From positions 69,899-133,898 of the forward strand of contig DF237035.1 in the NCBI GenBank assembly GCA_000708835.1: a DNA stretch of 64,000 bases, in the 5' to 3' direction. A program made the translations under genes and the position numbers. This document shows positions 513 through 58,310 of this stretch, piece after piece (within the stretch, counting starts at the first letter, position 1; the number at the start of each line of letters is the position of its first letter). The DNA is from Klebsormidium nitens. Its lineage: Eukaryota; Plantae; Klebsormidiophyceae. The notes under the pieces were generated by a model that ran no database searches, was not told the origin of the DNA, and saw only the letters and a program-made list of their open reading frames with translations.

Positions 513-1389
513 TAACCGGAGCTCAAATCGCCAGATTCGCGTTTCACACACACTCCATGACACCGGCGAGCTATCACTTCTGCTAATATCAAGGCACTGC
601 AACTTCTTTTGCGGCCCGCACCCAGATGCTCGTCGGTTGACAGCCACTCTGGACAAGCTTGGCGCCTGAATCCCACATTTACCTTTCAATCTGGGCAACA
701 AAGTCGTCTACAAATCTACCCTGAATTCAAGCGTCCTTCAGCCCTTTCATGCTTATGCAACCAGTGCGAGCTTTGCAGTGTATATAAAGTGTGGGCTGGC
801 AGTGGGACTCTGAGAAGCGCAATGTCCACTGCGGCTGCCTGAGTTTTGAAAGCTGCCAGTGCCTGGTTAGATCAGTAACCGAAATCACACAGGCACCCTG
901 GTTACAGCTTTGCCTCCTCTCCAAGTCACCTCCGTTATCGTTCAGTGTCTGGTGGACCGGTAGCTCGCGGCCTCCAAATAATATATTGTGTAGTCTAGAC
1001 AACCGCCGGTCCGGCGGCCGCCTGCTTGTCGGGCAACTTTGACCATTATCGGTGTAACCCGCCTGTTTTTCATTGGTCAAGCTCATAACCCCTGGTTTGC
1101 TGTGTCAAAGTGAAGGTTGCTGAGGGAAAAACCTCCCTGCATTTCTCTTCCACGAGGCAGACATGCATGATGGCATTGACTTCTCCACCCCCTCCTAGAA
1201 CGCTGCATGAAGGCTGCATGCCACTATGATGGCCCCCAGCTTGCTGCCCTGCAGGGCTGGGCTGGACGCCACAGCAACACCGGAAATGCCTCCCACATTT
1301 TGCAGCTCACCAGAGCGAAATTGCAGGCTGTTACAGCTGACTTGCTGTAAAGTTCTACCTAAACAGGCGCCGATTGCAACGTCAGCAAC

Positions 1390-5268: not shown

Positions 5269-6365
5269 ATTTTGACGCAGGGCTTAGAACACGGTGATAA
5301 GAAAGTACTCTCGTCCAGATAATGCGGAAGTGAGTTAGCAGCTTGAGAACGTCAGAAAAGAGTCGAGATGCAACAACGATTTTAGTTGCTAGGAAGCAGA
5401 TCTTGTGTACTACACATGATGTACATGTACTTTACTAATGAGGAGAGTGTATCATATAAACACCGCAGTGCAGTAAAGTGCAGCAAAATGTTACGGACTG
5501 ATATTTCCGATATTTTCTCAGCGGATGGCGCTTCTGCTCTTTTTCAATGAGGATATACCACACGAATATGTTGGGTTTTGCTAGCATCATTGACCGTGGT
5601 CACTCTGTCAGAAAGTAAGAGAGATTAAGCCCTTCGACTGGCCCTCGCCTGGCCCTCATCATTGTTGATACCATCTCTGGCCAAATCTCTTAGTTCCTTT
5701 ACGGCACATGCATAGTACTATGATGTATGAACGGCTCAGCATGGTGGTTTACTTAAATTATATAGACTCGCAGCTTGTTTTGCATGCCGGTTCTAAGCCC
5801 CCCGCTGCAGAGCTGGACCACAGCCGATCGACGCACTGCACTGCGGCGCGAGTGGCGACCGTCGCACCAGCATTTGACCAAACCATCTACTTCGTCGGAA
5901 ACGTCCTCAACGCCAATCATTGTCAATGCACGGAAGACTCCTCATGCAGTCCGTATACTAAGTCATCCTTATCGGCGCTGCATTTGGAGCATTCTGCCGA
6001 TCCACGGAGGTACAAAGCAGTACAGCGCTTCTCCGTGAGCCCTTCCTGAACGTGCCTGCATGCCTTCGTCAAGTTGGGGTATGTCAACCTCAAGTCCTTT
6101 CAAGCTATTGTTCAGTACAGTTGACATTGGCCGATCCTCGAGCCCATGATGCTCAGTCCGTGGCTCCACAGTGCTGCTTTGCTGGGCATGCAGTTGACTT
6201 ATCATTGCTCGGAGGTTCAGCAAACCAAGAAAGTTTTTCCACCAGGAATAGTTGCTCGAAGGGTTCAGCAAAGCAGGAAGTCTTTTAATCAGGAATAGTC
6301 TTGGGCTGTCACAGCAAAGCTGCCTTGGATACCTCCAACAATCAGGCGTCGTTTGCAACGTCAGC

Positions 6366-9300
6366 ATGGCTCCCCCCGACTACAAGGATCTCTTCTCAAT
6401 CGAGGGCAAGACGGCCCTGGTTACAGGGGCATCGTCGGGCATCGGGTCCCGCTTCTCCGTATTTCTGGCGTCACAAGGGGCATCGGTGGTGGTGGCAGCT
6501 CGCCGGAAGGACAAGCTGCAAGACCTTGTTCAGGTTAGAAATCATTCCTTTTAATCGGCTCCAATTAAGGTTACTTTCCGGGCGCCCTTGTACATTTTGC
6601 AAGATGTTGTGAAGGTCAGGAATCGTTCCTTTCTAGGGGTTTCAATTGGGTTCATTTGGTTTTATTACGCCCTTGTGCGCTTGGAGCATGAGAGTAGGAG
6701 GTGACTGAGAGATGATATTTCACACCGGTTTCACGGAAGCCGACCGCTGCCAGTTTTAGATTTCTGCAAGGCTGACACGTACAGGACTATCTTCGATCAA
6801 AGTAAACACGAGTCAAGCAATGGAACTGGACCTTTTGCAACTACATCCCATCAGCGTGTATTGAACCACCATCCACAAATTAGAAAATTTGTAGGAAAGA
6901 GACCGAGAAGATTGCAGTCAAGATTCTTTGGAATCTGTATGTCTCTCAAACTTTCCTTCAATCAGAGTCAGTACTTTATCTGGATTCAAGGTACTGCTTC
7001 ACTCGACCTTCCTGACTACTCTCCTTTCCTGCGGGTCCGGTGCATGACGTTGAGATCTACTCCGTGTGCAGGAGATTGAAAAGGCGGGCGGCAAGGCAAA
7101 GGCAGTCGAGCTGGATGTGTCGGCGGACCAGGAATCGATCAAGAGGAGTGTGGACGAAGCCTGGGCAGCCTTTGGAAAGCTGGATATTCTGGTAAGGAAG
7201 GAAACGTAAAGGCACCGATGCGGAAAGCAATAGACCTCACCCTCTGAACCGACGAACGTTCTGCCCGCTTCATCCCTTTACAAAATATATGCTGCTTGTA
7301 GGGAGATAGAAGCGGAACACCTGTTTCTAGCTCAGACGGCCGGCAGTGTCCTGATTCGTTTCGAGTCCGCTGAGTGTACTCAAAAGGCGCTTCCACAAGC
7401 TGCATCTGGACAGATAGCACCTCAGTCGTTGCACGAGATGAGTTTCTCGAGAATAACCTCGTCCGTCTTTCCAGATGGACATCTCGGTCGTTCCAGCTGT
7501 TGATGGGCGCCTCTCACGAGGTTTGGTCAGCCCCACAGCTCTCGCAAGCTTGTCAATGACTTGCGATTGCAATGCGCCCAGTGAAAAGTGCCATACGAAA
7601 CTCGATTTGCCCGAAAGTGTGTCTCCACTCTCCAGGTGAACAACGCAGGGACCGCCGGTGGGGAGGGCCTTCTCAATGACCGGCAAGAGACGTTCGACAA
7701 AATTTTCAACACCAACGTGCGCGGTCTCTACTTCACCGCTCAAGCCGTGGCTAAGCTGATGGTCGATCATGATGTTACGGGCAGAATCGTAAACACGAGC
7801 TCGATTGCTGGGGCGGAGATGGTCACAGTTGGGTACGCCATCTACTCTGCTTCCAAGGCCGCGATTATCCAGCTAACCAGGTGGGTCAGCGGTTCTGTTG
7901 GCTGGGTTAATTCAGCTAAACCAGGTCGGACACAACAATCTGAGGTTGCGCTTTCATCGCTTTGAATAATGATGAGGTGGGTTAGCGGAGTTTCGAACTC
8001 AGTGCTTTTTGAAACGGATCAGGTGGGTTAGAAGCGATGGCTTGTGCGCTTCGCTTCTCAGTGAGCTCATATACGAGACTTCATCCTGCGTGGTCCATTA
8101 CTATTTCGTGGCACTGTCGGAGGATTCCTGCCTTCAAAAGTTGTGAGTCTTCCTACTCTTCGCCTGGAAGCTCTATATGATTCTCCTCGATCCCGTCCTG
8201 GCTCAAAGCAACTTGGACTGCTTCTACCTTTCCGCCGGGCAGAGGTTTGCAGCACTAGTTTGAAAGGACAGGAGAAAAGCCTCCGGTAAAGCATTCTCCA
8301 GAGATTATCCGGTGCCTGACTGAAATCTGTTTCGATTCTGATATACATATAACGAAGTGGAACGGCCCTGCCGAAGCTTCGTCGTTGAAAGGCAGACTTA
8401 CCTGCTTCTGCTTTTCCCTTACGTCTGACGCCTTCGCTGACATCAGCAAAGTTCGTGATTGCGTCTGAAGGGCGATGGCGGTCGAGCTAGCTCCCAAGGG
8501 CATCAATGTGAACAGCATCGCGCCCGGCGTCTTCCCGTCAGAAATGTCGAGCCCATTTACTGAGAGCGAACAAGCCAAGCAAGTCCAGAAGGCACTCCCT
8601 GCGCGCAGGTCGGTTTCCAAATCACTAACTCCATATTTGGATTCAGTCACATATATTTCTTTTTCCTTGTCTTTGGAGTCAACTTTTGTCGATTGATTGT
8701 CATTGCTCAAAACTGTTCATTTTATCGCTCAAATCATTTCTCAGGAAGAGCTTGGACTTTCCTGTTGACATTCCTTGGGCGGTACGTAGTTCCTTTTCAA
8801 CGTTCTGCAGGGCTGCTTCTGCTTTCCATATCCGTGTTTTGATCGCACAACCAGTCGGCCACATCCTTTGGAGCATCCTTGAAGCTACTCGATTCATTTA
8901 TATGTTGATCGGATCGAATTCTCGTCGTGATTGGTTATCCCCCTCCCCTTTCCCATCATATTCGAATCGAATGGAGAAGGGACACTGCAGAATGCTATCT
9001 TCGTAGTTTGTATTCTGCCGAAAGGGCCCCTGACGTCATCCACGCGTGTAAGCAAAGGATCTGCAGGGAGCCCATTGAAGAATCTTTCCCTCGTGCAAAG
9101 CGCTTGTTTGACAGCCGTCCGATTGTTCCGTCGGATTTGACCCTCGTCCTCTCCTCGACCAGGACAGGGTTTAATTTCGCAACTTTCGATGCTTGGAGGC
9201 CTGGACGTTGATTTGGGAGACTGTGATCTTGCTGAAGTCACAAACGCGAGCATGTTAATATGAATACAAACCTACCTGCAAGCTCTCGAGTCTGTCAAGT

Positions 9301-9539
9301 GAAAGGCCGCCTTGTCATGACGGTTGAACCTGCCCCGCTTCTATGCATGTTCTCAATGTTCTATTACCATCTTAAATCACAGGTACGGAGACACGGAGAA
9401 GGACATGATGGGCGTCCTCCTGCTCCTCGTGAGCGAGAAAGCGTCACAGTACATCGTCGGTGTGACCATCCCCGTGGATGGTGGACATTCGCTGTACACC
9501 ATGGACCTATCGAACCCAACAGCCATCTTTGAGGAGTAG
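6366..9539 (+). CDS. Classical short-chain dehydrogenase/reductase, copy 2 (tandem paralog), 275 aa, 5 exons
   Basis: Exons 6366-6533, 7072-7191, 7636-7880, 8471-8608, 9383-9539 have the same lengths and phases as copy 1. Motifs TGASSGIG, NNAG, YSASK are intact. Confidence 0.93.
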
Positions 9540-42200: not shown

Positions 42201-45106
42201 AAGATGGGCAAGCGTTTCGAGCGTGAATCGCGGGCGCCCAACCGAAAGTGGGTGCGATTCACAGGCGCCTGGCACGACCTATGAATGGTGACTGAATGTA
42301 GCTTTTGGAGAAAAATGAAGGCTGCGGGACGCCCGCGTGCAAGACTCCTTCTGTCGGAGCGTCCAAGAGGTTCTGCAAAGCGGACGGGAGGGATCGGAGA
42401 AAAGTGGATGTGGTTTTGGGAGATCCAATGCTGTGGGACACGCGCGCACGCCTCCTTCTGCCAGGCTTCTTTGGAAGGGAGATTGGTCCGGAATGCATAC
42501 TGAGAAATGGCTTACCTAGCATCGCTTTGCCTCCTCGAGCGTAAAAAACGTCGGGTTCTCATGCGAAGGGCAAAGCGAAGGAGGGGCCAGAAAAGCCAGG
42601 TCAAGCCAGGGCTCGCATATTGTGTCAGAGGCACAGTCAGATACATTTCTAGGACGTCTCTGATGTCTCTGACGTCTCGTTATGAAGTAGATAGGAGGGT
42701 AGGCCTGGTTGATTGGAGACACGAACAGCAACGGAGCATAGACTCAAACCACTGCCAAGCGTTGCGAACATCCATCATCCTTCGTAGCAGAATACGATGT
42801 TTCTAGATTCCATCCTGTGGCTCCACTATTTTGTTTATCAGCAGCTTCGTCTGCCAGATCAACTCACCTGTTGCTGGGCCAAGCTCTGCGCCAGCGCTCC
42901 CGCTTCTTCCTGCTGCCTCCGCAGCAACGAGGCGACCTCCAGGAAGGCATCCACCCCAGCAACATTCTGCGGCACCAAAACCTCCTTGTTTTCAGCCAAG
43001 AGCCTATCGCCGTAGCGGATTCGAGCGAACTTCAAAAACAAGTCTTTTCGAAAGTAAACTAAATTACGTTCCCACAACGAGATGGTTCGAGGGCAGCTTG
43101 GAATTAGTCACCCTCGTCAGAGGGCAGCCGCAAACGTCCTCCTCTGGCTCAGAAGTCGTCCGTATAGATCTGGCTTCAGTCAGCGATCTGTTGAAAAGGA
43201 AACTCTTTGTTGCTGCACAATGGCCAACTTGTGTGCGTTTTCAGCTTGCAGCCGATCGCTTAGCACATGCGCACCTAAGAACAAACAAACATCGCGCTCT
43301 CAGTCTTAGTTCGTGGTCAATCATCGCTCTTAGCTGCAGCGATTACCTCAGGTTCACCCACCATGGTCTTCTCTCTGACCTTTACAAGCCGCAGGGTCAC
43401 CCCAGACCAACTCACCTTGGTCTTCTCCTTAACCCTTTCCACCCGCCCCCCCAGCTGCTCCTTTTCTCCCTCGAGCCCCGCCAGCTGGGCTTTCAGGCTG
43501 CGGGGGTCCCGCTGCGTTTTGCGGCTCTGGTCCACCGCCTTATGCACCTCCTTGAACTGCTCTTGGAGCTCTTTGACCAGCGCGTGCGTGTCCTGGATCT
43601 CAGGATCGAGAAACAGCTCCTCGGGGATGGGCTCGTCCACCAGGAATTGAGCCAGGTAGGCGCGTTTTTGGAGTAGGGGAAGCTGCCGGAGGAAAAGAGA
43701 GTATATCAAGGGCTGAAAGCTGGATATCAACAGAATCTAAACAAGGAGGAGCTCGCCTTAAGAGCTGGATATCAACGAAGTTTGAAACAGAAAAGCTTGA
43801 GTACAGGGAAAGTGGAAGGGTTTAGGTGATGTGGAGATGGAATGTTGTGTGAGGGAAGGCCGGGGGAAGGATAGATGGATGTGCGGGCGCAGGTGCTGAG
43901 AAGCTATATTGAGTCTGAAGCGAATCGTTGAAGACGCCGGGTGTTAGATCTGGGATAGCTCGATGATTCTGGATTCGGCGGAATGTGTTATGGAGTGAGG
44001 GAAAGGAGGGGGACAGCCAGTAGGGAAGGTGAAAGAAGGCATGACTGAACAAGTGGCGAGTTTGAAATTGCGTCAACTTGCATATCAGAGTCCGTGTAAC
44101 GTGGGGTCTAGAGGGTCACCTGGTTGAGGAGCCACAGTAGCAGAGGATAGACAGTAAGCGGGTCTGCGTCGAGCATACCCTGTCGGAAGGTGGCCCTGCA
44201 AGAAACAATATCGTTACACAATTGTCAGACTCACATTTCATAAGACACCACCACAGGCAACTCCCTTTGATTGTTCCTCTATACACTGAAGGTGCATAAG
44301 CAGAGTTTTACAGAGTGAAAGACTTATCGGACTGTCAGTTTCACAGTGATGGTTCCACAAATGCAACTTCTACGCTTCTGTATTCCATGTTGAAGTGGCA
44401 GGTGCTTCTTTTCTACTCACCCATCGGTACTGACTTTATACTTGAGCACCCTCAGCAGGTCGAGGTGCCGCGCGGTGGTGACATCTGGCGTCTCATCCCG
44501 CAACTCACGCCGCTGCCAATCATTCGCAAACGCCTTTGTTACCTTCTTGTGATTCATAGCTTTCATCAACACATTGCGCAGTGCTTGCAGATGTGAAGAG
44601 CAGAGGATGCGTCAAGCTGATCAAGTTTGACTGACATTGTTGTGATTGGCTCTTGATGTGAGGCTTTTTGAACTAGTATGCGTTCTCCAAAACTTACCTG
44701 TCTGTTATCAATGGTGGCAAGGACATCGTTCAGCAGCTCTCTCAGCTCCTGAGGTGACTTTTGGCTGCAAATACCGATAGATAAGGAATTTAGTAAGCAG
44801 ACGTACAAGAAAGTACTAAAATGGTGGTTGAGGATGCTACTTATTGAATCATGGTGGAGCAGAACAGGGGACCACATTCTCAAAGTCAATTGAAAGTGTC
44901 CATGAAGTCCCATATTAGCCCTAGCAACTTAACGCTCAGTGACTTGTGGTGAGCTAGGAATGTACCTTTAGGGACAGGCCCCGCAGATTGAGCTCCAAAT
45001 GCCACAGGGCAATGGCTGCTGCAGCTCACCTAAAAGAAACCAACGACAGCGCCAAGTCGAATGGGGCTTGGTTGAGCTTGTCAACGATCTGCTGCAACTC
45101 CCCCAT
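36278..45106 (-). CDS. IFT81: Intraflagellar transport protein 81
   Basis: MGELQQIVDKLNQAPFDLALSLVSF, ELLNDVLATID, LLRVLKYK, FRQGM...VYPLLLWLL, KRAYLAQFL, VLKGEEFKRYAASLRSK, IKERKAALAPRVKDLRALR, end GGANRLVI. Mapped exons include 45106-45030, 43682-43416, 42966-42868, 42184-41933, 41357-41139, 39811-39601, 39148-38920, 36316-36278. Confidence 0.92.
39850..40460 (-). repeat. Array of at least four decayed copies (~140-175 bp period) of the IFT81 acceptor plus exon start
   Basis: Real exon at 39811 reads GSGRVLKGEEFKRY. Copies start at 39985, 40126, ~40279 and 40443 and, in the aligned frame, read SGRLLKGDEFKRH, ESGLVLKADESKRY, ILEGEVFKRN and RVLKGEPFERD. Confidence 0.9.
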
Positions 45107-45827
45107 TTTGGATGCACGCAGTGTCTCAAAGGGCAAAGCCGAGGAAGCAAGGCAAAAGCAATTATCTCCAAGGATCCGGTCACCTCTTCAAGGACTATCT
45201 CTGCTTCCTTCTCTTTCCCTATGGAATAACCAAGCAGATTGTGCAAGCAGCTGGTTGTAAACCTTTGCAGCGGTGCACTGCAGCTGAACTCTTCTGCTTT
45301 TCGTGACGGTCAGGTTGGAAATTTATGCCCATTACAATGTAATGGTGCATAGATTGAGCTGATTATCGACTGCTACATAGCGCGCCGAGGTGCTCGAATC
45401 TAAACCCATGATCACTCAGAGTTGAAAAGTGCTCCAGGACCCTGGCTGCAGCCCTCCAGCCCTCTTGCACTGGCAGGAGAGAACTTTGCACAGCCTCCGA
45501 TGTCCACAAGATGCTCAAGAGTCAAGCCTGAGCATGCCAGCACAAGCAGCCCAATGCACGTCTTGAGCACGTCTCATGAGCACGTCTTGTGAGTAAGCTG
45601 AAGCTGATGCCATGACACAGAGTCAGTCGCAGCGCATTGCCATGATCCATGACTCTATTACTCTGAGTGCAACACCCTAGGTAAAATTTTCAAGATGTAC
45701 ACAACCGATCGGAACCGAACCCTAATTCTTACGTCCGAAGCCTCAGGTGCGTACCCCGCATCAAAGTTCGAACGTCCGCCAACTGTATTACGTTCCTGAT
45801 AGTCGCCGGGGCGCAAAACGGCCAAAG

Positions 45828-46348
45828 CTGCCGAATCTTTTGTCAACTTTCGAAACCGGACTCACGCGGACTGCGGAAAGTCAGATGCGTGTCACCGTCC
45901 GATCGTGTACCGTCCGCAGGATCTACGCTCTGAGTAGCTGCCACATGTCAAGGGCCGAGTCCGGTACCGTACTCAGTACCGTACGGTTCGGGCGGCACCG
46001 TTGACTGCGTACAGAAGGTATGCACTGTCAACAAGCAACCGGGCACTCCTAGTGACATTAGGGTCTCGCGCTACAAAGCAGTGATGGTGTGTTAGGGTTA
46101 CGCCACTTCCTGTGACGGTTTGTTAGGGTTACTCCCTTTTCTGTGACTGCTCTCAGATTAGGGTTCCTACTAACGGCTAAGTCACTGTTTTTAGGATTTT
46201 AATGTGGTTTGCAGGCTAACTCCAGCATTATTTAAGTCCGGCGAAAGCAGGCCCGGTACCAACCGCGTCCTCAAATATGGCACTGCGGACAACGACTGCT
46301 TGTGCCCGTCCGGCGTCCGATTTCGAAAGTTGACAAAAGATTCGGCAG
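45828..46348. repeat. Perfect 28-bp inverted repeat enclosing telobox-like tandem units (foldback/MITE-like)
   Basis: ctgccgaatcttttgtcaactttcgaaa (45828-45855) is the exact reverse complement of 46321-46348. The interior has 3-4 units of ~31 bp with a TTAGGGT(T) core at 46060-46170. Confidence 0.8.
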
Positions 46349-47077
46349 GTATGTGCCTCTTGCCGCCGGGGCCCAAGCCTTGGGCCAAGGTTCGAGTCGG
46401 TGTAACGACGGTCAGGGCGCGGCTGCCCCGGGGGGCCCAGTCGGCGGCCCCGGCCGACACGCCGAGGCACTGCCGGCGGGAAAAAATATTGTACAGGTCG
46501 GGGCGTTTTTTTGAGCGAAAAAGGGGGTTCGGGGTCGCCGAAGGCGGCCCCAGGGGGTCCTACGGGGCGAAGCCCCGGGGCTCGGGGGCCCCTGAAGTTT
46601 GAACTTCAAGGGCTCATGCCCACCGCGTACCATACGGCGCGGCCACGCGCGTCTAGAATGCGAATCTCAGGAAGACAGGAAGACAAGCCGTTCAAGATGG
46701 ATTACAATCATCTAATCATCGGCACATCAGGTAGCTAACTGATCTGGCACAAGTACGCATATTATATGCAGTAGTATGTGCACAGCCGAATTCCGTCAGA
46801 ACTATCTTAAACAGCAGGCCGGCTCAAGCTAACACCCCAATTCTTCAAAGATGCATTGCATGAATGCATTGATCTTATTAAGTTGACAAGATTCCGATAT
46901 CACTAAATCGATCGGTAAAACTTTGACTAGAGTTCTTTAACATATCACAAACGGATGAATAAACTTTGTGGCGATACGACAATAAACATGGTCAATAAAC
47001 AACTAAGGTTGCCCTTTCAACCGCGACTCTTACTGTAACTATTAAGTTGTTTCATGCTTTCGGGCACCTGCATTGTC

Positions 47078-50000
47078 CTATTGGTAAGCCGCAACCAGGC
47101 CGCTTTCTACAGTGCTTTTTGATACCTTTTCCACCTCTATATTATTCTTAGATGGTCGGGCAGGAAACGACTGGCCACTTTGAAGCTGGAAACGTGTGTC
47201 TGTGAGCGGTGGTTGGAAGAAAATGGGGTGTGCAACGCCGCCCTCCATGGGCAACGTTGCAAACGGTGGGTATGCGGAGGGTGCGAACGGAATGTTGTGA
47301 GCAAAGGTGGGCGGATAAGGATGGATTCCACCAACGAACGGGTTGATGGAGGTCGACGGTGCATAGTTGGGTTGCTGCAAGGAACCGGGGTTGTGAGCGA
47401 TGAGTGCGTTCAGGGAGTCTTTCCGAATGAAGTCTTTGACCAGGCCCTTCTCGTACTTTTTCAGAAGAGGAATGTTCTTCTGATGGATTGCGTTGTCAGG
47501 CCCTGAGATCTGAGAAACCGTAAGAGCAGCCCGTTGATTCCACTCGTGACACATATTGATCCAATTGGTGGACGACTTGGTGGAGTGCCTGGAATAAAGC
47601 TCCGAGAACAGCCGAGTCTCAGCGGGGGTCGAAATCGGCCGGATCAGCTCGCGGAGCGCTGGCCGTCGCACGCCACGTTTTTTGATGAACAGAAGTCGCC
47701 CATGTCTTTTCACCTCTTGGCCGGACTCTGACGGTAGACGCACGTCCCCACCAGACCGTTGGGTGGATCCGCCCAGTTCCCCTGTACGACAAGCATCTGG
47801 TCAATATTGAACGAAGCTTCCAGGAGCCTGGGCTTTCCCATACACTATCTCTTCAAGCAAAGCTTTTAGACAAGCTTTCTACAAAGTACACAATGAAGTA
47901 TGTGCAGCATCTCGACATGTGAGCAGAACACAGTATTGCCGAAGGTGGAGTCCCAAAAGTTCGAAGATGACAAGTCTCAGAACTCTGCTTGCTAAAAGCA
48001 GATGACACAATAGCTCAGTCCTTTTTGGCACTGAAGAGGTATCCTTTCGGACAGCACTGCTCGAACTTTGAACTACTCAGACTCATCTATGACGACCAGG
48101 TCGAGGCAATGGATCTGATCTGAACATGTGGCGACAAAAGAAGAATCAAAATTGCTCTCACTGACCTGTTGCGGAAACACCGTACAATCCTCCACTATTG
48201 GGCTGGAAACGTACACCTGGAACAACCGGATCTGCAAGACAGACGCGTCTCAGTGAATCGATCGCGATGAACGGACGCCTAAGTCATGACATGCGCAATG
48301 CTCTTTAAAGGAGGCCGCACCACGTCATTCTGCCTTTCACGCAAACAATATCCTAGAGCTTATATTCATCGGACACAATCTTAGTCGGCCTCGAATCTGG
48401 GCACTCTTGGAAACGGTGTGACTACTCAAAGCAAAGTGGCCCAAGGATAATTGGACACTCAGTGACTGCCGGTTACCGCCGTATAAAAAGAGTCATCACA
48501 CCGGAACTCACCGTCTCTTGTGGAGCTGGAAGGAGTGACGTCTTCGTGGTCAACTCGCTTTCGTTTCGTCGCTGCGAAATAAGAAGAACGTCATCAAAAG
48601 AAAGTCGCATTTCATCTATCCAACTCGGGAGGCCTCGAATACACGCATCTGCAAATCGACTCTTTGACAAAGACTTGCTGTAAGCGACTTGTCGAACTGT
48701 GGAAGAAGGCTTGGATTCGAAGGTTGCTCTAGAGCAAAGGAGGAGATAATCTTACCCAGCTTCTCGCGGCGAACCAGCCGGGCCGCAACTTGCATTGGGA
48801 TCCTTGGGAGCCCGTCGTGGTGAGGTAAGTGCCCGGGCTGCACTCCAGGTTGCAGCGTAGCTCGCGCAATCCCAGCCAGCCCGTCCCGGTCACAGGAGTG
48901 CACGCAATCGGGTCTCAGGTGCGTCTCGAGGCGCACGACCCGGGGCAGCCCGTCCTGACTGGGGGGGAAGGAGTGCGACGGCTGGCCCCATGATTGCCCT
49001 GCCGCGCGCGCGACTTGGGGGATCCCTTCTTGGGAGGTTGAGGGAGAGGGTGCGGGCTGCCCCCTGTTTGCGCCGCCGCGCGCGCGACTTGGGGGATCCC
49101 GTCCTGGGAGGGGNNNNNNNNNNNNNNNNNNNNCGCGGCGCGCGCGACTTGGGGCAGTCCGTCCTGGGAGGGGGGGGGGAGAGTGCGGCCTGCCCCCCTG
49201 GTTGCGCCGCCGTGCGCACGTCTCGGGGCAGTCCGTCCTGGGAGGGAGGGGGGGAGAGTGCGGGCTCTTCCCCCTGTTGCGCGGCGGCGCGCACGTCTTG
49301 GGGCTCCTGGTTGGGGGCCCCGGGTGAGGACACGGGCGGGTTTCGAGCCTGTCCGTCATGCTGGGGCAGGGAGGCAACCGCGGGGGTGGCCAGAGGGGTG
49401 GATCCATCCAGAAGCGCTACCGCCACTGGTTGCTGAGGATGAAGTGCGCCTGCAAAAGCAGCCCCGTGCTGGTCATGAGGGGTCTCATATTCAAGCCGCT
49501 GAGGTAAAGATATGCAAAGCACAAAGACCCGAAAGCATCAGAAAGCTGTTGAAAGCGTCCACGCAATGAAACTCTCCTAAGCGAAGCGGTGTTAAGAACA
49601 ACAGCAAGCCAAAGGGATGTTCTGATTGCAACATGGTAAGCTGAACACGTCCTAACGAAGCTTGCGATTGCTGCCTGGAAGAATAAACGAAAAAACGGAT
49701 AAGGAAAGAAAGCACAAACATAAGACGCAACTTGAAAAATAGAGGAGAAAGTCCTATAACGGCGAACCTCGTCTTTCAATGACCTGAACATAAGCTTTTG
49801 TTGACGGTTCGGAGTTCGGCCGCCCAAGGAATTGATGCCTCACCCGCAGCCTGCGCGCTCTTTAGATGTTGCTCCTCCAGCATGGTCTCGACGAAAGTGG
49901 CCTCCTCATCCAGAAATTCCGGCTCTTCCCCGGCAACTTCCTGGGAGACCCCTGCCCGGATTGGCACAGTGCCTGCATGGACGCCAAATCGCTCTTCGGT

Positions 50001-53000
50001 CGGCGGAGCGCGCCGCCACTCTGGACACGGATTTGGCCACCTCATCGCTGCGCATGTGTCCTGCATCGCTTCTAGCAGCCAGTGATCGAACATTCCCCAG
50101 TCTTTTGCCCCCTTGCTGCGAACGGCACACTCATAGTTCCACCGGTAGTTGAAGAGGGCGATTAGAGCCCCTGCAAGCTCCGGGGAGTAGTTGCCTCCGC
50201 CTAGCAGCGCGTTGAGGTGGCGGTGGTAGCCCTCGAGCGAGGAGCAGCCTCGCACACCGACATAACAGGGCATGCAGCCGGGCGCGCTCACGAGGATGTA
50301 CATCTCGTCCACATTCAACGGATCTGCACATGACGATGAATTGGTCAAGCATTTGCGCTTCATGTCCTTCAAGAAGCACGACGTATCAATGATAGCAAAC
50401 CTTTGCTTGCATGCAAGTGCTGCAGTCGTCCTTCTCAATCAAACACCGGCGCCATTACTTACTAGCCGCTAGGGGCACCGCACCAACATGGCAGTGTCAC
50501 TGAACAACATTATGACGTACCACAGAACGTGGTAAATTTGCTGCTACAGCCGGAACAAGACGGTGCCAGACGACAGATTTCAGTGCTCAAAACCCTGACC
50601 ATGGAGTCTTCCACGGCTCACCTGTTAGCAAGCCCTCTTGCATGAGCTGGAGCTGCAGCTCGTGCACGTGCTGCACGTCCTCAGTGATGAGAGGGTCACC
50701 GTGGATGATGCAGGTTCCCCTCTCATACTTCTTCATGACCGCTTCGACGCCGCTGACCAGCTCTTCAGGGGGGGGAATGGTATGGCGGCAGCGCGCTCGC
50801 CAGTAGCTCCCAGGCTTAGCGGCCACCCTCTGCCTGTGTCCACTTCCGCCTTCCTGGACCTCCAGCCAGGAGGAACTCTCGCAGAGCCCACTTGTCTTGT
50901 TGGTGGATCTGGAAGATTGCGCTCGAGTAGTCCCGGCAGAAGTCGGCTGCATCAGAACAAGAACCTTTACTTGACTGTTCTCAAGCTCTTTCAATAGAAC
51001 TTGTCACATGTGCATTTCACTGACACGTTGACCTTTAAAGAGGATTTATGTGCAATCTGCAAAGGCACTTGTGTCGGATGGTGCACAAAATGGAGATCAG
51101 GATTATGAAAAGTACCTGAGAAACCCCATGTTGGAGCGTCAACCAATCAATAATGCAGGATCAATGCGTCATCAAAAGAGATCAAGGTGAACAGAGGTCC
51201 CCACCTTTGAGGGAGTGGCCATCGGGAATGATCTCGAACACCCGCCGCATGACATGTGTGGCGTCCTCCAAAACTCTGCTCAAACTGGGGATGGCGTCGT
51301 ACAGCTGGGCAGCTACAGTTTGGGAGTTATCAACCCACATGTACTTGGGCAGCTGCAACAAAAAGACGCACATCTACGCTTAGCTTAAAACTTGGCCGGA
51401 CAATTGACAGCAAAGACCCAGCCAATTCGCAATGCATTACCTGCTGGCTACAACAACTTACATAGACTCTGATGACTAACTGAGAAGTTACAACGAGCGC
51501 ACTCCAGATCAGCATCAAAGATCTTACAGGCAAGAGAGCAAACCTAAGGACCCTATCCAGAAACACATGTCTCTTGAAGTACAGACCAAACGCACCTGGT
51601 ACCCAAGGGCATCATAGCGCTTGAGCACATCTTGAACGCCAGTGGCGTACTCGTCAAAGGAGGTGTCGCCCACAGCCCACTGACCCACAATCTGCGACCA
51701 CTCATTCATTATCGAGTAGATAGCTGTGTAGTCCTTCCGCCCGTCAGCAGAGCGGATCCGGGAGGCTGCTTGAAAGGTGTGATCCCCTCGCCAGAAAACC
51801 CCATCCACCGCAGCCAGATGGCGTTCAAGAAACGCAAGCCGCGAATTCAGAGACGCTAGAATAACACCTGTACAACGAAGACAATGCATCAAGAGCAGAC
51901 CCTGAGCAAGTCCTCCCAAACAATTGCCAATGCATCTAACAAAAAGACCAACCAAGCAGAATGAAGCAGAATCTGTTCGGCGGCAACAGCATGCGACTCT
52001 GAAGCCCTTGTAATCTGCGCACAACTCAGCAGGTAAATGAAAGCGCTGGAACAAAAGGATTGCTTTGTGCACCAGATCTGCAAAGCTGTAGAGCAAATTT
52101 CAGTACGTGCAAGCAAGAAAATGATCCAGCAAGAGAATGATCTGACACCCTTAAACATACATGTCTACTTACCTGCTATCCAGGACGTTGAAGGGATCCA
52201 ACCTCGGTAGCCTTCCTTGTCCGCGTACTCTCCGAAATCAGAGGGGGGGGGGGGCGGCTGCTGAGCACGCCCAGGATATAGGTGTGCACCGCTCTCCTGC
52301 TGTCGAAGTTTGGCACGCGCTGCCGCATACTGAATGTAGGTAACCTTCTGCTGCGTGAAAGTGCGCATATGGGCTTCACGTACCATCTTCTGTTGGTCGG
52401 CAATAGAAGTACTGCTTGCTACATTCCGGACCATGGTGTCTAGCAGGCTGCGCTCGATAGCCCCACCACGGGTAAACACGATCGGAAGCTGATCCAGGAC
52501 CGCAGGGCATTGTCGCCGCAGCTGCTCCAGCACACCCTCATCGTGGGAGCGAAACTGGTAGGGCTTCCCGTCGTTCGCTGCGCAAGGAAACAATCCTTTC
52601 AGCGCCTTGAGCTGAACATAACTAAAAAGCTTGACCCGTCAGAGTCAACCTACTTACTGCCAGATGTGCAGAACAGTAACGAAACACAATCCACTAGCAA
52701 GCCTGTCCATGACACCTCTAGTACAGCTGACAACTCTTGAAGAGACTCACAAGTGCATCATCTGGACCTGGTCAAAACAAGTTAAAAGCTTGCAGATCAT
52801 GTCTTGAACGTGTCAGAAGGAACAGCAAGAAAGATAACAACGGTTGTACATCTTACAACAAGTTATCAGCACATTGTCATCAAGCCTGAAGACCAGAAGA
52901 GTTGGATCTTTCAGCGCTAAACTTGACGTACCTGGACAGCCCTCGCCCTTCTTTCTGCCCTTCCCACAGCGAAAAACCTTGCTGAAGAGAAATGCAAGCG

Positions 53001-53379
53001 CGTTCGCACTGCACACGCGGCGAATCTTCTCTGAAACCCCAGTCCAGCCATCGGATGTCACCTTGTCCACCTTTCCGCACTTCGGGCAATAAATGACTGG
53101 CACGAGCTCTCCAAAGAAAAACTGCCAGAACACAAAGTAAACCACCTTGCCGGCCAGGTGGAAGTGGTTTGGTTGCAAGGCCTTCTGCCCTCTGCTTGCC
53201 TGCACCGGATTAGGATACTCTTTCTTCATGCTTGGCCAATACCTAGGATCGGGGGCTTGATCCTTTGACGGGCCCACTTTTGGGTCTATGTCAGGAATCA
53301 CCCAAGGCGGCTTATTCTTTTTGTCCTTCCAGTTAGCAGGTGGTGCAACCTGATCATGGGCCCACTCTACAACGTTCAT
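47078..53379 (-). pseudogene. Multi-exon DDE/RNase H-fold transposase-like gene (DxxH type, resembling DUF6729-associated proteins) with one frameshift
   Basis: Cys-rich YCPKCG..TSDGW...RRV...VFRC. Putative catalytic D in RGDHTF, D in WVDN, DATH signature, E in RGCSSLEGYHRHL. C-terminal PISTPAETRLF...WINMCHEWN...KNIPLLKKY. Clean GT-AG exons (to 52932, 52585-52170, ~51870-51597, ~51348-51203, 50946-50623, ~50320-49790 and others). In-frame TAA at 50816-50818, with homology continuing in another frame. Confidence 0.7.
48930..49300. repeat. GC-rich coding minisatellite (~63-66 bp unit) inside the transposase-like gene, with a 20-N assembly gap at 49114-49133
   Basis: Repeated gcgcgcgacttggggcagtccgtcctgggaggggg...gagagtgcggg. 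The minus strand encodes repeated DVRAAAQQGEEPALSPPPSQDGLPR-like peptides. Confidence 0.85.
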
Positions 53380-53941
53380 TGCACAGATTTCATCCTCGCT
53401 CCTTGGATTATATTGGCAGCTGTATCTCCAGACGCCTTAGATCCAGGTCCACTGGTCAGGATGCTTTGCACAGTGCGGTTGGCTTGGACTCCTGTAGAGC
53501 CTGTGGCAGCACAGTGACCCGGGCCAGACGCCATAGTGCGGTTGGTACCTGTCAGAAAGGCTCTCAGCTTTTCAAAAGGAAGCCATTGTCACAGGACCTG
53601 ATGTGCCTGTGTTTTGATTCTTTGACACTGCACAGTGCACCATACCTACGTCAGTCAGTCTTCAACTTGCGAGGTTTGCTGTAAACCTTGGCCAGACTAG
53701 GCGGTTAACCAAACAGTATTCAAATTGTGGTCGCCTGCGCTGCTCCCCCCTTCCTTGTGTCCCCCGGCCTTCTGCAAGGCAGGAACCCCACGCAAGATTT
53801 GGTCAGCTGCTTAATTTCCAACCGCCAGATGTTCGGCCACTGTGTCATATCGAACGGCAATCTCATGGTCGTTAGTCCGACTTCACGCATCAGATTCTGG
53901 CTTCTCGTTGACTGTTAGTCGGACTTCCTAGCACCAGGTGA

Positions 53942-53981
53942 ATCGTTAGTCCGACTTCAATTCCGAAGTCGGACTAACGAT
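53942..53981. other. Perfect 17-bp hairpin/palindrome upstream of the transposase-like gene
   Basis: atcgttagtccgacttc-aattcc-gaagtcggactaacgat. The arm motif recurs at ~53868-53885 and, as a variant, at ~53914. Confidence 0.9.
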
Positions 53982-55763
53982 GCATCACAGGGCCGGATTC
54001 GACCCCGGCCTGCGGCCGCCCGCCCACCGGGGGAGTCGGGACTGCCTCAGTTGGTCCGCAGCGTGCAATGTCGACAGTTTTCAGGATCGTGCGCACTCGT
54101 GTTCGCGATGTTACCGGTCGTACAAGGTAACTTCGACCGTGTATTCTACCGGCTTTTCGCTGGTCGAGGACTTTGACGCAGGGTTTCCCATGCCGACTTT
54201 TGTCCCGATAACCGGTATTTGGCTGTACCGGCCGGCCGAGCACAGCAAGTGCCTGCATTTCCTGCCGGCTGAGCAGCTGGCGGGGTGCCTTCGGCACCGG
54301 CCGGGGTCCCATCTCGGCCGGCCGGGCTCTTGCCGCCCTGCTTCGACGAGGCGGAATGCACCAACATCAACCGGTGCTCCGAATATGGATATACCGTATT
54401 GTACAAAAAGTGATGGCAAAAAGTGCACCCTTACGTGCTTCGACCAATCAGAAGTCGTATCTTCGATTCGCTTTTCTCAGAGCCGTACACAAGATCCTGG
54501 GATGTATCGTTGCTCGTTGGCACGATTTGCCGCGGCCTCGGATCGCCGCACGACAAGTTCTAAAAGTTCTATCTGTACAGTGTACAGTGTACGAGTAGTA
54601 ATGATGTAACGGATCTGCAGGTCAACGCGGCGACTCGATGACGCGAGCGGGTCGCAGCAGATGTGTGCATGTGACGCAGCGGAGATGCATCAAAATTTGA
54701 AACTTGACACAAGCTTACGTTGGTGATGTATGCGTTAACGGACAAGCAGGAGGCGTCGAAGACGAGGGCGGCGCTTTTGAAATTTCAAGGAAGCTCTAAG
54801 ATTATTGGAACTTTAAGATATTATTACCTTTGCGGTTATCAGAGCCCGACTAGCGCTCCGATCGGGCAATTTTGGTAGCGATCGCCTTCTCGAGTATAGA
54901 AGAGCAAGGCAATACCGGTTAACTTGACCAATCGATGGTGTCAAGCAGTTGCGAGATTATCGGCAAGGCGTGTTCAGACATGCCGTGTTATTTATGTGCA
55001 TGCATGCTAGGTACGGTACCTATGCTCGGTATTGTCACCGTATAGGTACTGTACTACTGTACCGGTACCTGCACCTCATGTTGAAACTTGGAAGTGCGCA
55101 CAATCTACCTAGTCATGATGCACTCCTACGGTAGGTACAGGTAGTAGGTAGTTGCTAGCGTCACTGCACGCAGCACAGTGCACAGTGGCGGCAAGCCTCT
55201 GGCTGCTGGCACCGATCCAAAAAGTTCATGCCAGCTGTTCTGGCTAGCGGGCGAGGGCCCGGTCCCAGGGTCACTTTTTTGCCCTTCCTGTATCTGACCA
55301 AGGCCCAAGGGCGCCATGCAGCTTGCCACAGGAAACGCTGTGGCCTCGGCGAGTCTGTCGACCACCTACGGGTTTATCCTGGTGCAGCCCACCATCCTCG
55401 CCACCAAAGTGGCGAAGCTAGCTAAGCGACGCTGAAGTAGACGAGAAGGGAGGTATGTCAAAGGTGCGCAGCTCCTGTCTTGCACGTATGATTGAGCTGC
55501 AGAGCTTTCGTGAAGAAGCTGGGATTGTCCAGGATTGTCGGATCTCCGCTTCATAGTGGACTTGTCCCTGGAAAAGGTCTTTATTCAAGCTGGATTCTGC
55601 CAGCGTTAGTCTAGTCCAGAGAGTGGCTTGAGCAAGTGTACTTTTCTTTCATTTTGTATTAAGCCCATGGGGCCGTAGCTAGCTTGAATCTGCTTCTGAA
55701 ATTAGCTAGTTGCGTCACCTTTTGTCAGCGAGCAACTATAGTAAAGCGACGCCATCGGTGGTC

Positions 55764-58310
55764 ATGAAGAGAGATTGGTAAGCAATTGGGAATGGGCGAG
55801 TCCCTTCACGATTCCTGTTTTTCTATCTATGTGCAAAAGCATATGGTTGAGGGACACAATGTTGTCTGGGCCGACGGAGTTTGGGTGATGACTGTGTGGT
55901 ATCGAAAGATGATTTAGGGTCAGCGTTAACTTTCGTGCAGCATGGTGATATTCTTACATGGTAGTGCGCAAGTGCAGCATTCAAGGTGTCCACATGTGAC
56001 TTGAGAGGGCACATTGACACGTGTTGCGTAATCTGCATGGAAGGTTTCAAAAGAAGTTGCCCTATTTTCCTGCTACGAGGGGCTGATGTTAGTGCTCAAC
56101 CTCTCATTGATCGCTGATATTATGATCTGCTGAGACGGTGTTTCACGTTCTTGCCTGCAAGCCGTTGAAAACTGTTTTTGTCACTACAGTATCATCATAT
56201 GAAATACTTACGCAGATACCGTTTTTTTCTGCAGGGAGGCCTTCCATACCGATATCTTCACGAATCACAGGCTTGAGAGCATGACTACACCCCTGTCATC
56301 AGCTCATCGCACTTCCCAGCCAGATGTTCCGTGTGTTATGGAGCCATCAAGGATATTGATTCCAGATGTCAGGGAGCCAAACGGTTCAATTGACCCTGCA
56401 TGGTAAGTATCCACTGTGGGAGTAGTAACATATGCTCTTCACTCCACAAAATGCCTTGATACACCTTCAAGAACTTTTTACTTTTGTCATTTACTTTGAC
56501 GCTCTCAGAGGTGGACAGAAGCATTGACAATTGTTACTTCATTTTTAGGGCAGACACAATTTGTAGCCATTGACGCCCACCAGCCTGTGAGCAATTGACT
56601 CTGCTTGCAAAGGGTCTGAAACTGTCATGTTTCTCCAGACTTTCAACCGTTGCTTTCTCAAAATGCAGGGAGTGCGCAGGCTTCCATTCCCCCGCCTCCT
56701 CAGGCTTCCGGGGCTACACAAGCCTAGTCGATTCCCCTGGCAGCTTTTTCATCCCCGTGCCTGGGGCATCACGATCATCCGCGCCTAGTTCTTGCAGCAG
56801 CCCCGCCGCGTCTAGTTTTGACTTTAGCAGCCTGCATGCATCTGGGTTACAAGCTGCATTTGGAGCCCACCCCAGCAGCAGCACCTTTCAGAGCCTCTCC
56901 CTAGGAACAGCGTCAACGAGCAGCAGCGATAACTCCTCTACTTCGTCGGACCGACCGAGCCGGCGGCGAAAGGTTGCAAGTCAGATGCCAGACTGGATGG
57001 ACCAGGGGATGGAGGTGGTTGGGCAGGGTGCCTTAGACTCAGATTCTGGTTTCTGGGGGGCCCAGGACCTTGCTGGGGGGCAAGAGTCCAATGCAATTCT
57101 GCAATTCGCAGGGGCCAGAATGGACCTCCCTGCTGGAGGTCAGATGCAGGGGGATTTGCTCAACATCAAGCGCGAGGCATGCGACCTGCCGCTTGTCCCC
57201 ATTGAGCAATACAGCTGGCTGAATGGGGAGCTGCAAGTCAGGTGAGGACGCAAGGAGAAAAGTGCTCTCTGAAATAAACGTGCCAATTTCGTATTTTGGA
57301 TGTGGCACGAAGACCAAAAGACTGTCTTTGCTGTGTGCAGGTGGAAGAATATAATGCCGAACATAATCATGTGCAATTGCTTTGTATTTATGCTGATTGC
57401 TTTCTGGTGAATTTGTTGCATGTGTTGGATTCTGTTTCACATATCAGAACTGTGGCACTGATATACAAGTGAGTGTTTAGAAGACAGTGCTTTTCCAGCG
57501 TTCTCTGCATAGAATACTCCCGAACGCGGCATACCTCGTGCCGCAGGAGCAGGTGGCAATCATTTGGCTGAATCCGCATAGAAAAGCTAAGACCTCCCGA
57601 AAGGCTTTCTCCCGAGCTTAAAGAAAAGTAGGGAACCTAGCTTTTCAACCTCACAATACGCTACTTCTGAGCTTGAATGGTCCCTTGCTTGTTGCCCTGC
57701 AGGGTATTTATACCTCTCGTGGGCGTCCACAATCTACCTGAGAGTTCTATCTTGGTGAACTATGGGACTGAGTCACTGGAGCTGACAGTCCGAGATACAC
57801 CTAGGGGCGTCCAGCATAGGCTGGCCTTTAAGCAGTAAGTGCAGCAACTGTGCAACAGTTGGAAACATTTTCTCAACTGCTGGAGCCTGCACGTTGGTTC
57901 AAGTGATTGTTCCCAAGGCAGGGAGCAAAGTTTTCAGTGTGCGATATTCTGGTGCCTGGAGGTTTGGACTTCTGATCGGGAAGCATCACTTTTACGGAAG
58001 TGGACATGCACTAGCTTCGTTATTCGTCTCCTTACATTGAGAAAATTTGAGCTTCCTCCCCTTGAGATACTCTCGTAAATGCTAGCTTCCAACTAAAGGA
58101 GAGAAGTCGAAGTCGATGCTTTTACGAAGGCTGTCCTTCAATGCTACCTCTGCTCCCTTTGGCAGGTTATATGGGGAGATCGTCCCCCAAGATTGCAGTT
58201 TTTATCGACGTTCTGACAAGCTGGTTCTCAAGTTGACCAAGGTACCAGGGCGGCTGGACGCATTCAACAAAGGAAGGCCGTTGGAATGGTTCGCTCTCAA
58301 GTTCGACTAG
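55764..58310 (+). CDS. ~343 aa protein with a long Ser-rich disordered N-terminus and a C-terminal CS (p23/CacyBP-SIP-type) domain
   Basis: Exons 55764-55777, 56235-56402, 56669-57241, 57703-57834, 58166-58310 total 1032 nt, in frame. C-terminus PIEQYSWLNGELQVRVFIPLVGVHNLPESSILVNYGTESLELTV...LYGEIVPQDCSFYRRSDKLVLKLTK...EWFAL. The start codon is uncertain because of an upstream acceptor at 55728. Confidence 0.7.

Follow-up and report, generated by a model that had tools for sequence, protein, structure and literature searches.

A probable Dada-superfamily transposase gene, one of several diverged copies in Klebsormidium nitens

Dada transposons and the Klebsormidium locus

[quoted passage not shown] The elements are 4.7 to 11 kb long, produce duplications of 6 to 7 bp, and have no terminal inverted repeats but only short subterminal inverted repeats. 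All Dada elements with defined ends sit at a fixed site in a tRNA or snRNA gene, whereas the site of the "Dada-1" families is unknown; this site-specific insertion of many Dada into small RNA genes is what gives the superfamily its interest. The Dada of Laccaria (a fungus) and Ectocarpus (a brown alga) have an exonuclease inserted between the second catalytic Asp (D2) and the DxxH motif, and IS256, MuDR, hAT, and P have been named as distant relatives of the superfamily (PMC3706591).

The window analyzed here is a 64,000-nucleotide stretch of contig DF237035.1 from Klebsormidium nitens. The long, split DDE transposase gene that an earlier reading of the bare sequence (the sequence-only reading) had proposed is present on the minus strand, from about 53534 (ancestral start) or 53379 to 47078. 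Very probably, this stretch encodes the transposase of a DNA transposon that belongs to the Dada superfamily. Earlier assigned to an "ill-defined," unnamed family, the gene fits the superfamily described in 2013, which already included C. variabilis; it is a further member of that known superfamily and not a new lineage, and the copy here is one of several diverged Klebsormidium copies. The description "about a dozen clean GT-AG exons" stands as to a GT-AG multiexon gene, but 10 exons were placed and the reading frame is not clean. All of the motifs quoted in that reading were located in the gene, at the following positions.

53412..53534, minus: ancestral start of exon 1 (MASGPG.., ATG at 53534), from tblastn of P0158 and P0157
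52932..53379, minus: exon 1 (ATG at 53379), an open reading frame with 70-87% identity to six Klebsormidium homologues
CPKC 53088-53071 and C-x9-C from 52974, minus: N-terminal CCCC zinc finger in exon 1, inside the paralogues' DUF6729 match
52173..52577, minus: exon 2, helical part of the DUF6729 region; PF20499 E 1.6e-4; 69-86% identity to paralogues
51596..51867, minus: exon 3, core strands beta1-beta3; 80-91% identity to paralogues
51790-51773, minus: first catalytic Asp, RGDHTF, in exon 3; D1 conserved family-wide, block match to Dada-1_CV
51205..51352, minus: exon 4, with the second catalytic Asp and the DxxH motif
51340-51326, minus: second catalytic Asp, WVDN, in exon 4
51268-51254, minus: DxxH motif, DATH (LEDATH), in exon 4; D and H hardly vary across the family
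50622..50946, minus: exon 5, helical insertion domain; +1 frameshift at 50831-50833
49844..50323, minus: exon 6, with the catalytic Glu and the FNYRWN helix; 289 homologues at E<=1e-3
50240-50223, minus: catalytic Glu on RGCSSLEGYHRHL (SLEGYH) in exon 6; same motif in published fish Dada
48756..49449, minus: exon 7, Pro/Gln-rich linker of ~25-aa (74-75-nt) tandem repeats; assembly gap at 49114-49133 and two frame slips
48512..48571, minus: exon 8, with the basic patch TKRKR (48569-48555); phase-1 GT-AG chain through exons 7, 8, 9, and 10 from sequence
48166..48231, minus: exon 9, short and Pro/Gly-rich; inferred from a phase-1 acceptor and donor carrying the frame into exon 10
47078..47781, minus: exon 10, helical domain (PISTPAE..WINMCHEWN), then Pro-rich tail and stop codon
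47551-47537, minus: CHEWN motif in exon 10

Support for splicing, one of the checks proposed for the gene, comes from a Trinity transcript of a relative (P0158), which is spliced and collinear with exons 1 to 5 at the predicted junctions.

Predicted protein, its fold, and its likeness to Dada

The gene would encode a protein of about 1,200 residues in five parts. The N-terminal part would hold a CCCC zinc finger and a helical region (Pfam DUF6729) and would be followed by a putative RNase H-like DDE core, in which DxxH follows the second Asp and the Glu is preceded by a helical insertion, and then by a presumably disordered linker of 25-aa repeats, a basic patch, and a predicted Myb/SANT-like C-terminal domain. 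Across the family, the four residues D, D, H, and E show little or no variation, and among the homologues of exon 6 the residues R, G, E, H, and N are nearly invariant. The placement of the gene in the group of MuDR, hAT, P, Kolobok, and IS256, which share a (C/D)xxH signature, is borne out by the DATH motif and the DDE triad. A linker of the exon 7 kind is also found in the paralogues P0002 and P0156. The TKRKR patch is a likely nuclear localization signal. Exon 10 is 90% identical to the C terminus of P0156 and aligns to residues 455-584 of P0068 (E 1.3e-6), a segment that matches Myb/SANT domains with Z 6-7.3 when the P0068 model is compared with solved structures; the conserved helical domain of exon 10 is predicted to be Myb/SANT-like. 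If it works like the hAT and Mutator enzymes, with which it shares the C/DxxH motif, the protein would excise the element via a hairpin formed in the flanking DNA and reinsert it by a short staggered cut.

The gene shares with Dada the same DDE triad at near-equal spacing (D261/D331/E511 in the paralogue P0155 and D567/D635/E811 in Dada-U6_DR), a DxxH motif soon after the second Asp (here LEDATH), an N-terminal CCCC finger, and a multiexon structure (10 exons here and 11 in Dada-U6_DR), and its size fits elements of 4.7 to 11 kb. The relatives P0162 and P0056 read CPxC...RCxxC in the finger, whereas the second knuckle here is C-x9-C instead of CxxC; the long linker of 25-aa repeats is a further difference. 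Blocks in common with published Dada are DHTF..GSKPYEAIF..TTS..YWWVD, DYFHVLKR, and RGSTSLE-S..FH.HL..YRWN, the likeness to Dada-1_CV and fish Dada (Dataset S1, PMC3706591) being judged by eye on these motif blocks, with no E value attached. The nearest published host group is that of Dada-1_CV in C. variabilis. In the relatives P0119, P0100, P0051, P0097, and P0086, a PF01612 exonuclease splits the D1-D2 profile, between D2 and DxxH; this DEDDy 3'-5' exonuclease is absent from the gene in the window.

The relation to DUF6729 proposed earlier is upheld by profile searches, in which this Pfam model (PF20499, gathering score 27) covers the N-terminal finger region of the family. Exon 2 alone scores 21.8 bits. 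Of the paralogues, P0157 (27.1 bits) reaches the gathering score and P0156 (24.6 bits) falls slightly short of it, and two distant relatives, P0017 and P0056, lie above it (32.6 and 35.3 bits). Beyond DUF6729, no Pfam model matches the family itself in searches with 27 sequences, a mix of proteins and exon pieces, and profile searches of NCBIfam and PDB sequences gave no match. A literature search found no paper mentioning DUF6729 or PF20499.

The predicted fold was assessed on AlphaFold2 (AF2) models of relatives. The model of the paralogue P0156 (1,062 aa) is poor around D1 and its Foldseek list uninformative, and the compact relative P0068 was modeled in its stead (pLDDT 75). The P0068 model predicts an RNase H-like core, as had been expected of the gene, with topology beta1-3/alpha/beta4/alpha/beta5, and its Foldseek list consists almost wholly of transposases and integrases. 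Its best match is ISCth4 (Z 13.7, root mean square deviation 3.6 over 244 residues), followed by Hermes (9.7) and the P element (8.9); ISCth4 is also the top match of the P0156 model (Z 9.6-10.5). ISCth4 (IS256 family, PDB 6xg8/6xgx) matches the core, along with some of the region preceding it, and has the C/DxxH-type arrangement of the active site in common with the Klebsormidium family. It is, however, a bacterial enzyme of about 400 residues encoded by a single open reading frame, lacks the zinc finger, the linker of repeats, and the Myb-like tail, and shows no detectable sequence similarity to the family. Hermes (hAT) and the P element likewise belong to the C/DxxH group and have an RNase H-like core split by a helical insertion, as here, but their matches are weaker than that of ISCth4 and the Klebsormidium protein contains no hAT dimerization, BED, THAP, or GTP-binding domain.

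That the closest solved structure is from the IS256 family, and that the nearest ESM Atlas clusters include MULE, Mutator, and IS256 proteins, could point to a divergent Mutator/IS256-like lineage outside Dada, a reading that we regard as very improbable. An IS256 enzyme is the top hit to be expected of a Dada protein, because IS256 is among the distant relatives of Dada and, to our knowledge, no Dada structure has been solved. Moreover, neither MULE, Transposase_mut, nor PF20700 matched any of the 27 sequences even at E<=1, and the extras that define Dada are present: the CCCC finger, the RGxSxLE..H.HL..RWN block, and, in relatives, the exonuclease between D2 and DxxH. Zisupton/KDZ transposases occur in fish, fungi, and algae, and this overlap in host range is the point in favor of a Zisupton/KDZ-type enzyme. 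Its likelihood is negligible, and it was rejected because the Pfam profiles for KDZ_trans and the CxC domains hit none of the 27 sequences at E<=1; in motifs and in the order of its domains the protein fits Dada instead.

Frame breaks and the assembly gap

The exons had been described as clean, which is contradicted by four frame breaks relative to every paralogue. Each coincides with a homopolymer run; one is near 53415, one at 50831-50833, and two are in exon 7, the 75-nt repeat exon. At the first, a CC run near 53415, the ancestral N terminus (MASGPG..) is out of frame with the remainder, and tblastn with P0158 and P0157 places residues 1-41 in one frame and those from 40 onward in another. 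This ancestral N terminus is known from a transcript-derived homologue (P0158) and a gene model (P0157). The second is one extra G in exon 5 (GAGGGTGG, 50831-50833), with a stop three codons on; the paralogues all read ..TQAE-VAAKPGSYW.. at this point. Each of the seven Klebsormidium homologues aligns to exon 5 by tblastn as two overlapping segments whose frames differ, and the splice phases also demand a net change of -1 in this exon. The remaining two lie in exon 7, whose repeat peptide changes frame at a C10 run (49170-49179) and again at a G5 run (about 49045), and so occupies three frames in all.

The assembly gap, 20 N at 49114-49133, lies within the 74-75-nt tandem repeat of exon 7. Repeats start 60 nt apart across the gap and 74-75 nt apart elsewhere, so the gap is about 15 nt too short, or too short by 15 nt and some multiple of 75 besides. 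On either side the repeat peptide has the identical frame (35 equals 20 modulo 3), and both sides match one and the same paralogue collinearly; the two sides thus belong to one gene, and an in-frame join between them fits these observations. About 1,200 codons are without an in-frame stop despite 10-30% divergence from the paralogues, which suggests that the lineage was under selection until recently. As assembled, the copy is broken by these four single-base slips, and it may be either a recently inactivated copy or an intact one misread at homopolymers; 454 reads went into the published assembly.

Flanks, copies, and mobility

Two features were placed outside the coding region.

46449..46652, minus: noncoding stretch 3' of the stop, common to the locus of another copy (P0154 residues 971-1046, 52% identity, E 2e-12)
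53869..53984, no strand assigned: 14-17-nt motif (GTTAGTCCGACTTC) present four times, one pair of copies making a 20-bp hairpin; lies 335-450 bp upstream of the ancestral ATG

Residues 971-1046 of P0154 lie between its transposase and acetamidase parts, and the noncoding match to that locus indicates that 46449..46652 is probably part of the repeated unit. The GTTAGTCCGACTTC cluster may be a subterminal element or a promoter element; on the 3' side the motif is not seen above chance. Of the "hairpin-type ends" claimed earlier there is a single 20-bp hairpin upstream, with no counterpart on the other side. Searches for inverted repeats joining the two flanks returned only 10-12-nt chance matches and no terminal inverted repeats, a negative result that would suit a Dada element without being proof of one. 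A 23-nt inverted pair at 46710/53596 was rejected as element ends, being weak. Copies were compared as proteins, and neither ends nor a target duplication of the element was identified.

Dada elements with defined ends lie in a small RNA gene, whereas the Klebsormidium copy has no such gene in its flanks: ARAGORN reported no tRNA in the window, and Rfam gave nothing above chance in 43000-58000, both with the proviso that short gene halves could escape the tool. A CxxC..C/H..C finger ends ten distant relatives, and no such C-terminal CCHC finger is present in any frame of the minus strand in 49800-44500 or in the K. nitens gene models; it may lie beyond the searched stretch or have been lost. 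A speculative and rather doubtful reading of these observations is that the Klebsormidium copies form a Dada lineage without small-RNA-gene targeting or the CCHC finger, inserting in ordinary intergenic DNA and using the Myb/SANT-like tail together with the cluster of subterminal repeats and hairpin. If so, the site-specific Dada families might use the CCHC finger as a module for recognizing their targets. A streptophyte-alga Dada copy outside a small RNA gene would make a useful contrast, but only after its ends have been established.

The gene is multicopy, a point that the sequence-only reading had raised in setting a transposon against a single-copy host gene: the annotated paralogues in K. 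nitens number at least six, at 44-91% identity. They include KFL_012280010, KFL_013720010, KFL_001770280, KFL_006270040, KFL_006900010, and the "acetamidase" locus. With exon 6 alone as the query, 289 homologues were retrieved at E<=1e-3, including K. nitens GAQ92967 (79% identity). Such a family could also be a host gene family domesticated from a Dada transposase, no longer mobile and with a DNA-binding or nuclease role. The paralogues, though fairly diverged, have retained open frames and a catalytic core that is intact, a relative is transcribed, neither element ends nor a target duplication was found, and the Dada-typical C-terminal finger is missing, all of which would suit domestication. 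Domesticated transposases are, however, usually single-copy and syntenic, which disfavors this explanation, since there are several copies per genome, two of them on scaffolds of only 8-10 kb and another joined to a gene model of unrelated kind. The retention of D, D, H, and E would suit an active enzyme, the noncoding sequence 3' of the stop is common to another copy, and the copy here carries frame breaks; domestication is therefore unlikely, and a Dada transposon remains the preferred reading.

The earlier suggestion of horizontal acquisition was dropped: the GC content is like that of the surroundings, the gene is intron-rich, diverged paralogues occur in the same genome, and the nearest named relative outside Klebsormidium is the green alga Nannochloris. 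The kinship with proteins of the fungal, fish, and oomycete type agrees with the nearest ESM Atlas clusters, which are from chordates, cnidarians, oomycetes, and basidiomycetes. Two metagenome scans, with exon 6 and P0029 as queries, found no relative.

The Klebsormidium gene demonstrates no new principle. The assignment brings a "hypothetical protein" family of the model charophyte K. nitens, and by implication Pfam DUF6729, into a named transposon superfamily, and is of use for repeat masking and gene annotation. The fusion noted above is a case in point, as one K. nitens "acetamidase/formamidase" gene model is a chimera with a Dada-type transposase.

Exon structure and reading frame of the transposase gene

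The window gene was examined exon by exon, with splice sites set by translating pairwise exon joins, intron positions set with paralogue proteins as guides, and full-length paralogues serving as proxies in profile, family, and structure work. The sequence-only reading was largely right in its observations, as six-frame translation places all of its pieces and quoted motifs on the minus strand; its description of the exons as clean is wrong, since there are four frame slips, all at homopolymers.

Motifs of the window gene
53088-53071, minus strand, CPKC
51790-51773, minus strand, RGDHTF
51340-51326, minus strand, WVDN
51268-51254, minus strand, DATH
50240-50223, minus strand, SLEGYH
48569-48555, minus strand, TKRKR
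47551-47537, minus strand, CHEWN

Exons of the window gene (e1 to e10, in gene order)
53379 (ancestral ATG 53534) to 52932, minus strand, e1, paralogue-guided
52577-52173, minus strand, e2, paralogue-guided
51867-51596, minus strand, e3, paralogue-guided
51352-51205, minus strand, e4, paralogue-guided
50946-50622, minus strand, e5, paralogue-guided
50323-49844, minus strand, e6, paralogue-guided
49449-48756, minus strand, e7, paralogue-guided
48571-48512, minus strand, e8, phase-1 splice-site chain only
48231-48166, minus strand, e9, phase-1 splice-site chain only
47781-47078, minus strand, e10, conserved frame

All introns are of the GT..AG type. P0158, a homologue derived from a Trinity transcript of a related alga (85-90% identical), is collinear with e1-e5 over the predicted junctions and so supports this half of the model independently. 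For e8 and e9 the chain of phase-1 sites is consistent and reaches the conserved frame of e10.

Exon 5 aligns to all seven Klebsormidium homologues as two pieces in differing frames and carries one extra G (GAGGGTGG, 50831-50833) relative to ..TQAE-VAAKPGSYW.. in the homologues; the frames demanded by the e4-e5 and e5-e6 junctions lie one base apart, in agreement with this insertion. At the 5' end, the MAS.. start of P0158 and of the Klebsormidium paralogue P0157 runs directly into ..YNPR.EDE.., whereas the MASGPG open reading frame of the window (ATG 53534) loses register by one base at a CC run close to 53415, so that ATG 53379, the start chosen in the sequence-only reading, is probably incidental. 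In e7, a 25-amino-acid repeat peptide (..SQDGLP.V.RAA.Q.GG..) passes through three frames in succession, changing frame at a C10 stretch (49170-49179) and again at a G5 stretch (about 49045), and two repeat units measure 74 rather than 75 nt. Because all four slips are at homopolymers and Newbler was used on 454 and Illumina reads to build the published assembly of K. nitens NIES-2285 (PMC4052687), they may be read errors. The exons contain no in-frame stops despite 10-30% divergence from the paralogues, which argues that selection acted on the lineage until recently.

The e7 tandem repeat also contains an assembly gap of 20 N (49114-49133). Repeat starts lie 60 nt apart over the gap versus 74-75 nt elsewhere, which puts its real length at about 35 nt, or at 35 nt increased by some multiple of 75. 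On either side the repeat peptide keeps one frame (35 equals 20 modulo 3), and both sides match the paralogue P0156 in order. The two sides are thus parts of one gene, and joining them in frame is compatible with the sequence.

Assignment to the Dada superfamily

The only Pfam match was DUF6729, which is confined to the N-terminal region; the core had no match in Pfam, NCBIfam, or PDB sequences, and the literature searched contained no mention of DUF6729 (PF20499).

DUF6729 scores (gathering score, 27)
Window exon 2, 21.8 bits
P0157 (Klebsormidium paralogue), 27.1 bits
P0156 (Klebsormidium paralogue), 24.6 bits
P0017 (distant relative), 32.6 bits
P0056 (distant relative), 35.3 bits

The sequence-only reading correctly recognized a transposase of this broad class; the lineage it regarded as ill defined already has a name, the Dada superfamily. 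[quoted passage not shown] The triad of Dada-U6_DR (D567/D635/E811) compares with D261/D331/E511 in the paralogue P0155, and the CPKC...C-x9-C finger of the window gene with the CCCC finger of Dada. Around the first two aspartates (D1 and D2), Chlorella Dada-1_CV reads ..CDHTF..AKKI..GSKPYEAIFNMLN..TTSMQEV..YWWVD (PMC3706591 Dataset S1) and the window gene ..GDHTF..SRIRSADGRKDYTAIYSIMNE..DTSFDEY..YMWVDN. The DxxH block is ..QDYFHVLKR.. in Dada-1_CV and ..EDATHVMRR.. in the window gene, and the glutamate block is RCARGSTSLE-S..FH.HL..YRWN in fish Dada versus VRGCSSLEGYHRHL..FNYRWN.

The most telling point is an insertion in relatives retrieved with e6. The Dada proteins of Laccaria and Ectocarpus have a DEDDy 3'-5' exonuclease placed between D2 and DxxH (PMC3706591), and in five homologues (P0119, P0100, P0051, P0097, and P0086) the D1-D2-DxxH profile is split around a PF01612 domain. 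These unannotated metagenome and NCBI proteins repeat the published architecture, with a WRN-like exonuclease inserted between D2 and DxxH and, in one, a SAP domain. Ten distant relatives have a CxxC..C/H..C finger at the C terminus; no exon encoding a C-terminal CCHC finger was found between 49800 and 44500. Judged by its sequence, the gene fits the original Dada description closely, and from the motifs, fingers, gene structure, D1/D2 and glutamate blocks, and exonuclease insertion in relatives we conclude that it encodes a Dada transposase. We infer that DUF6729 corresponds to the N-terminal CCCC finger and helical region of these proteins.

Predicted fold and proposed mechanism

Structure prediction was run on two proxies and gave an RNase H-like core. 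The P0156 model was weak (pLDDT 59, poor around D1), with ISCth4 of the IS256 family as top match (Z 9.6-10.5, 265-268 residues). The model of P0068, a compact relative, reached pLDDT 75 (core above 85) and has the order beta1-beta2-beta3-alpha-beta4-alpha-beta5, in which D1 sits on beta1, D2 follows beta4, and a later helix carries the Glu. Nearly all of its Foldseek matches were transposases or integrases, ISCth4 first (E 5e-5). An exhaustive aligner scored ISCth4 highest (Z 13.7, with rmsd 3.6 over 244 residues), ahead of Hermes (9.7) and the P element (8.9); lower scores went to retroviral integrases (about 8), Transib (7.4), and RAG1 (6.5). The original paper placed Dada near IS256, MuDR, hAT, P, and Kolobok (PMC3706591); as no Dada structure has been solved, a top match to IS256 is expected and is not evidence against Dada. 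The nearest ESM Atlas clusters agree with these affinities: they comprise DUF6729 proteins from chordates and cnidarians, "MULE" fragments from oomycetes, a basidiomycete cluster that bears the exonuclease, and IS256.

The conserved C-terminal domain in e10 aligns with P0068 residues 455-584 (E 1.3e-6), of which about 455-546 match three-helix domains of the Myb/SANT type (Z 6-7.3, with rmsd 1.2-2.6 over 45-75 residues). A DNA-binding, Myb/SANT-like domain (window 47537-47640; P0068 455-546) is a modest but plausible prediction. Matches to it include the Myb domains of SNAPc on the U6 promoter, which is curious given that Dada elements target U6 and U1 genes, but may be generic.

The finger and Myb-like domain would bind either the target or subterminal element DNA. 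Nicking of the ends would fall to the DDE/DxxH core, which would free the element via a hairpin on flanking DNA, as reported for Hermes and the Mutator element Muta1 (PMC5499845), and the 3'-OH ends would then be joined to a staggered target cut.

Copies, element ends, and flanks

At E<=1e-3, an e6 query (window:49848-50321, minus strand) retrieved 289 of 1.84 billion proteins, including several annotated K. nitens relatives.

Relatives of the window gene
GAQ92967 (KFL_012280010), Klebsormidium nitens, 884 aa, 10-kb scaffold
KFL_001770280, annotated relative
KFL_013720010, annotated relative, 7.8-kb scaffold
KFL_006270040, annotated relative
KFL_006900010, more distant annotated relative, 44%
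Nannochloris protein, relative, 34%

None of these relatives is identical to the window gene (64-91% identity per exon), and the window copy therefore seems unannotated. The K. nitens paralogue P0154, an "acetamidase/formamidase" model of 1226 aa, fuses a transposase to an FmdA gene. It is a chimera in which residues 1 to about 650 are Dada transposase, followed by repeat linker and translated non-coding DNA, and only the last part is the start of a signal peptide and acetamidase. Its residues 971-1046, between the transposase and acetamidase parts, match window non-coding DNA at 46652-46449, so the repeated unit reaches at least 430-630 bp beyond the stop.

No inverted repeat joining the two flanks was found. 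At 53869-53984, which is 335-450 bp 5' of the ancestral ATG, a 14-17-nt motif occurs four times in a cluster that includes a 20-bp hairpin and has no partner on the 3' side; with this single upstream cluster, the earlier proposal of hairpin-type ends is unsupported. The proposed horizontal origin is unsupported too. The window contains no tRNA and the flanks of the gene gave chance-level Rfam matches only, so this copy is not visibly within a small RNA gene. Dada-U6_DR has a short 5' and an approximately 1.5-kb 3' non-coding part (PMC3706591); if organized similarly, the element might, as a guess, extend from about 45.8-46.4 kb to about 54.0 kb.

A 565-bp unit (45806-46370) borders the shared non-coding stretch immediately on its 3' side; its inverted arms of 56 nt are 82% complementary, and it resembles a MITE or a piece of the transposon 3' region. 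Very GC-rich, low-complexity stretches flank the gene on either side (53985-54340 and 46380-46600); they share a common word of only 11 nt and may come from another repeat family. Elsewhere in the window, 1361-5268 and 6340-9539 share five collinear blocks (135-266 nt, 82-94% identical) with offsets of about 4.3-5 kb, a pattern that resembles tandem segmental duplication of a gene with several exons.
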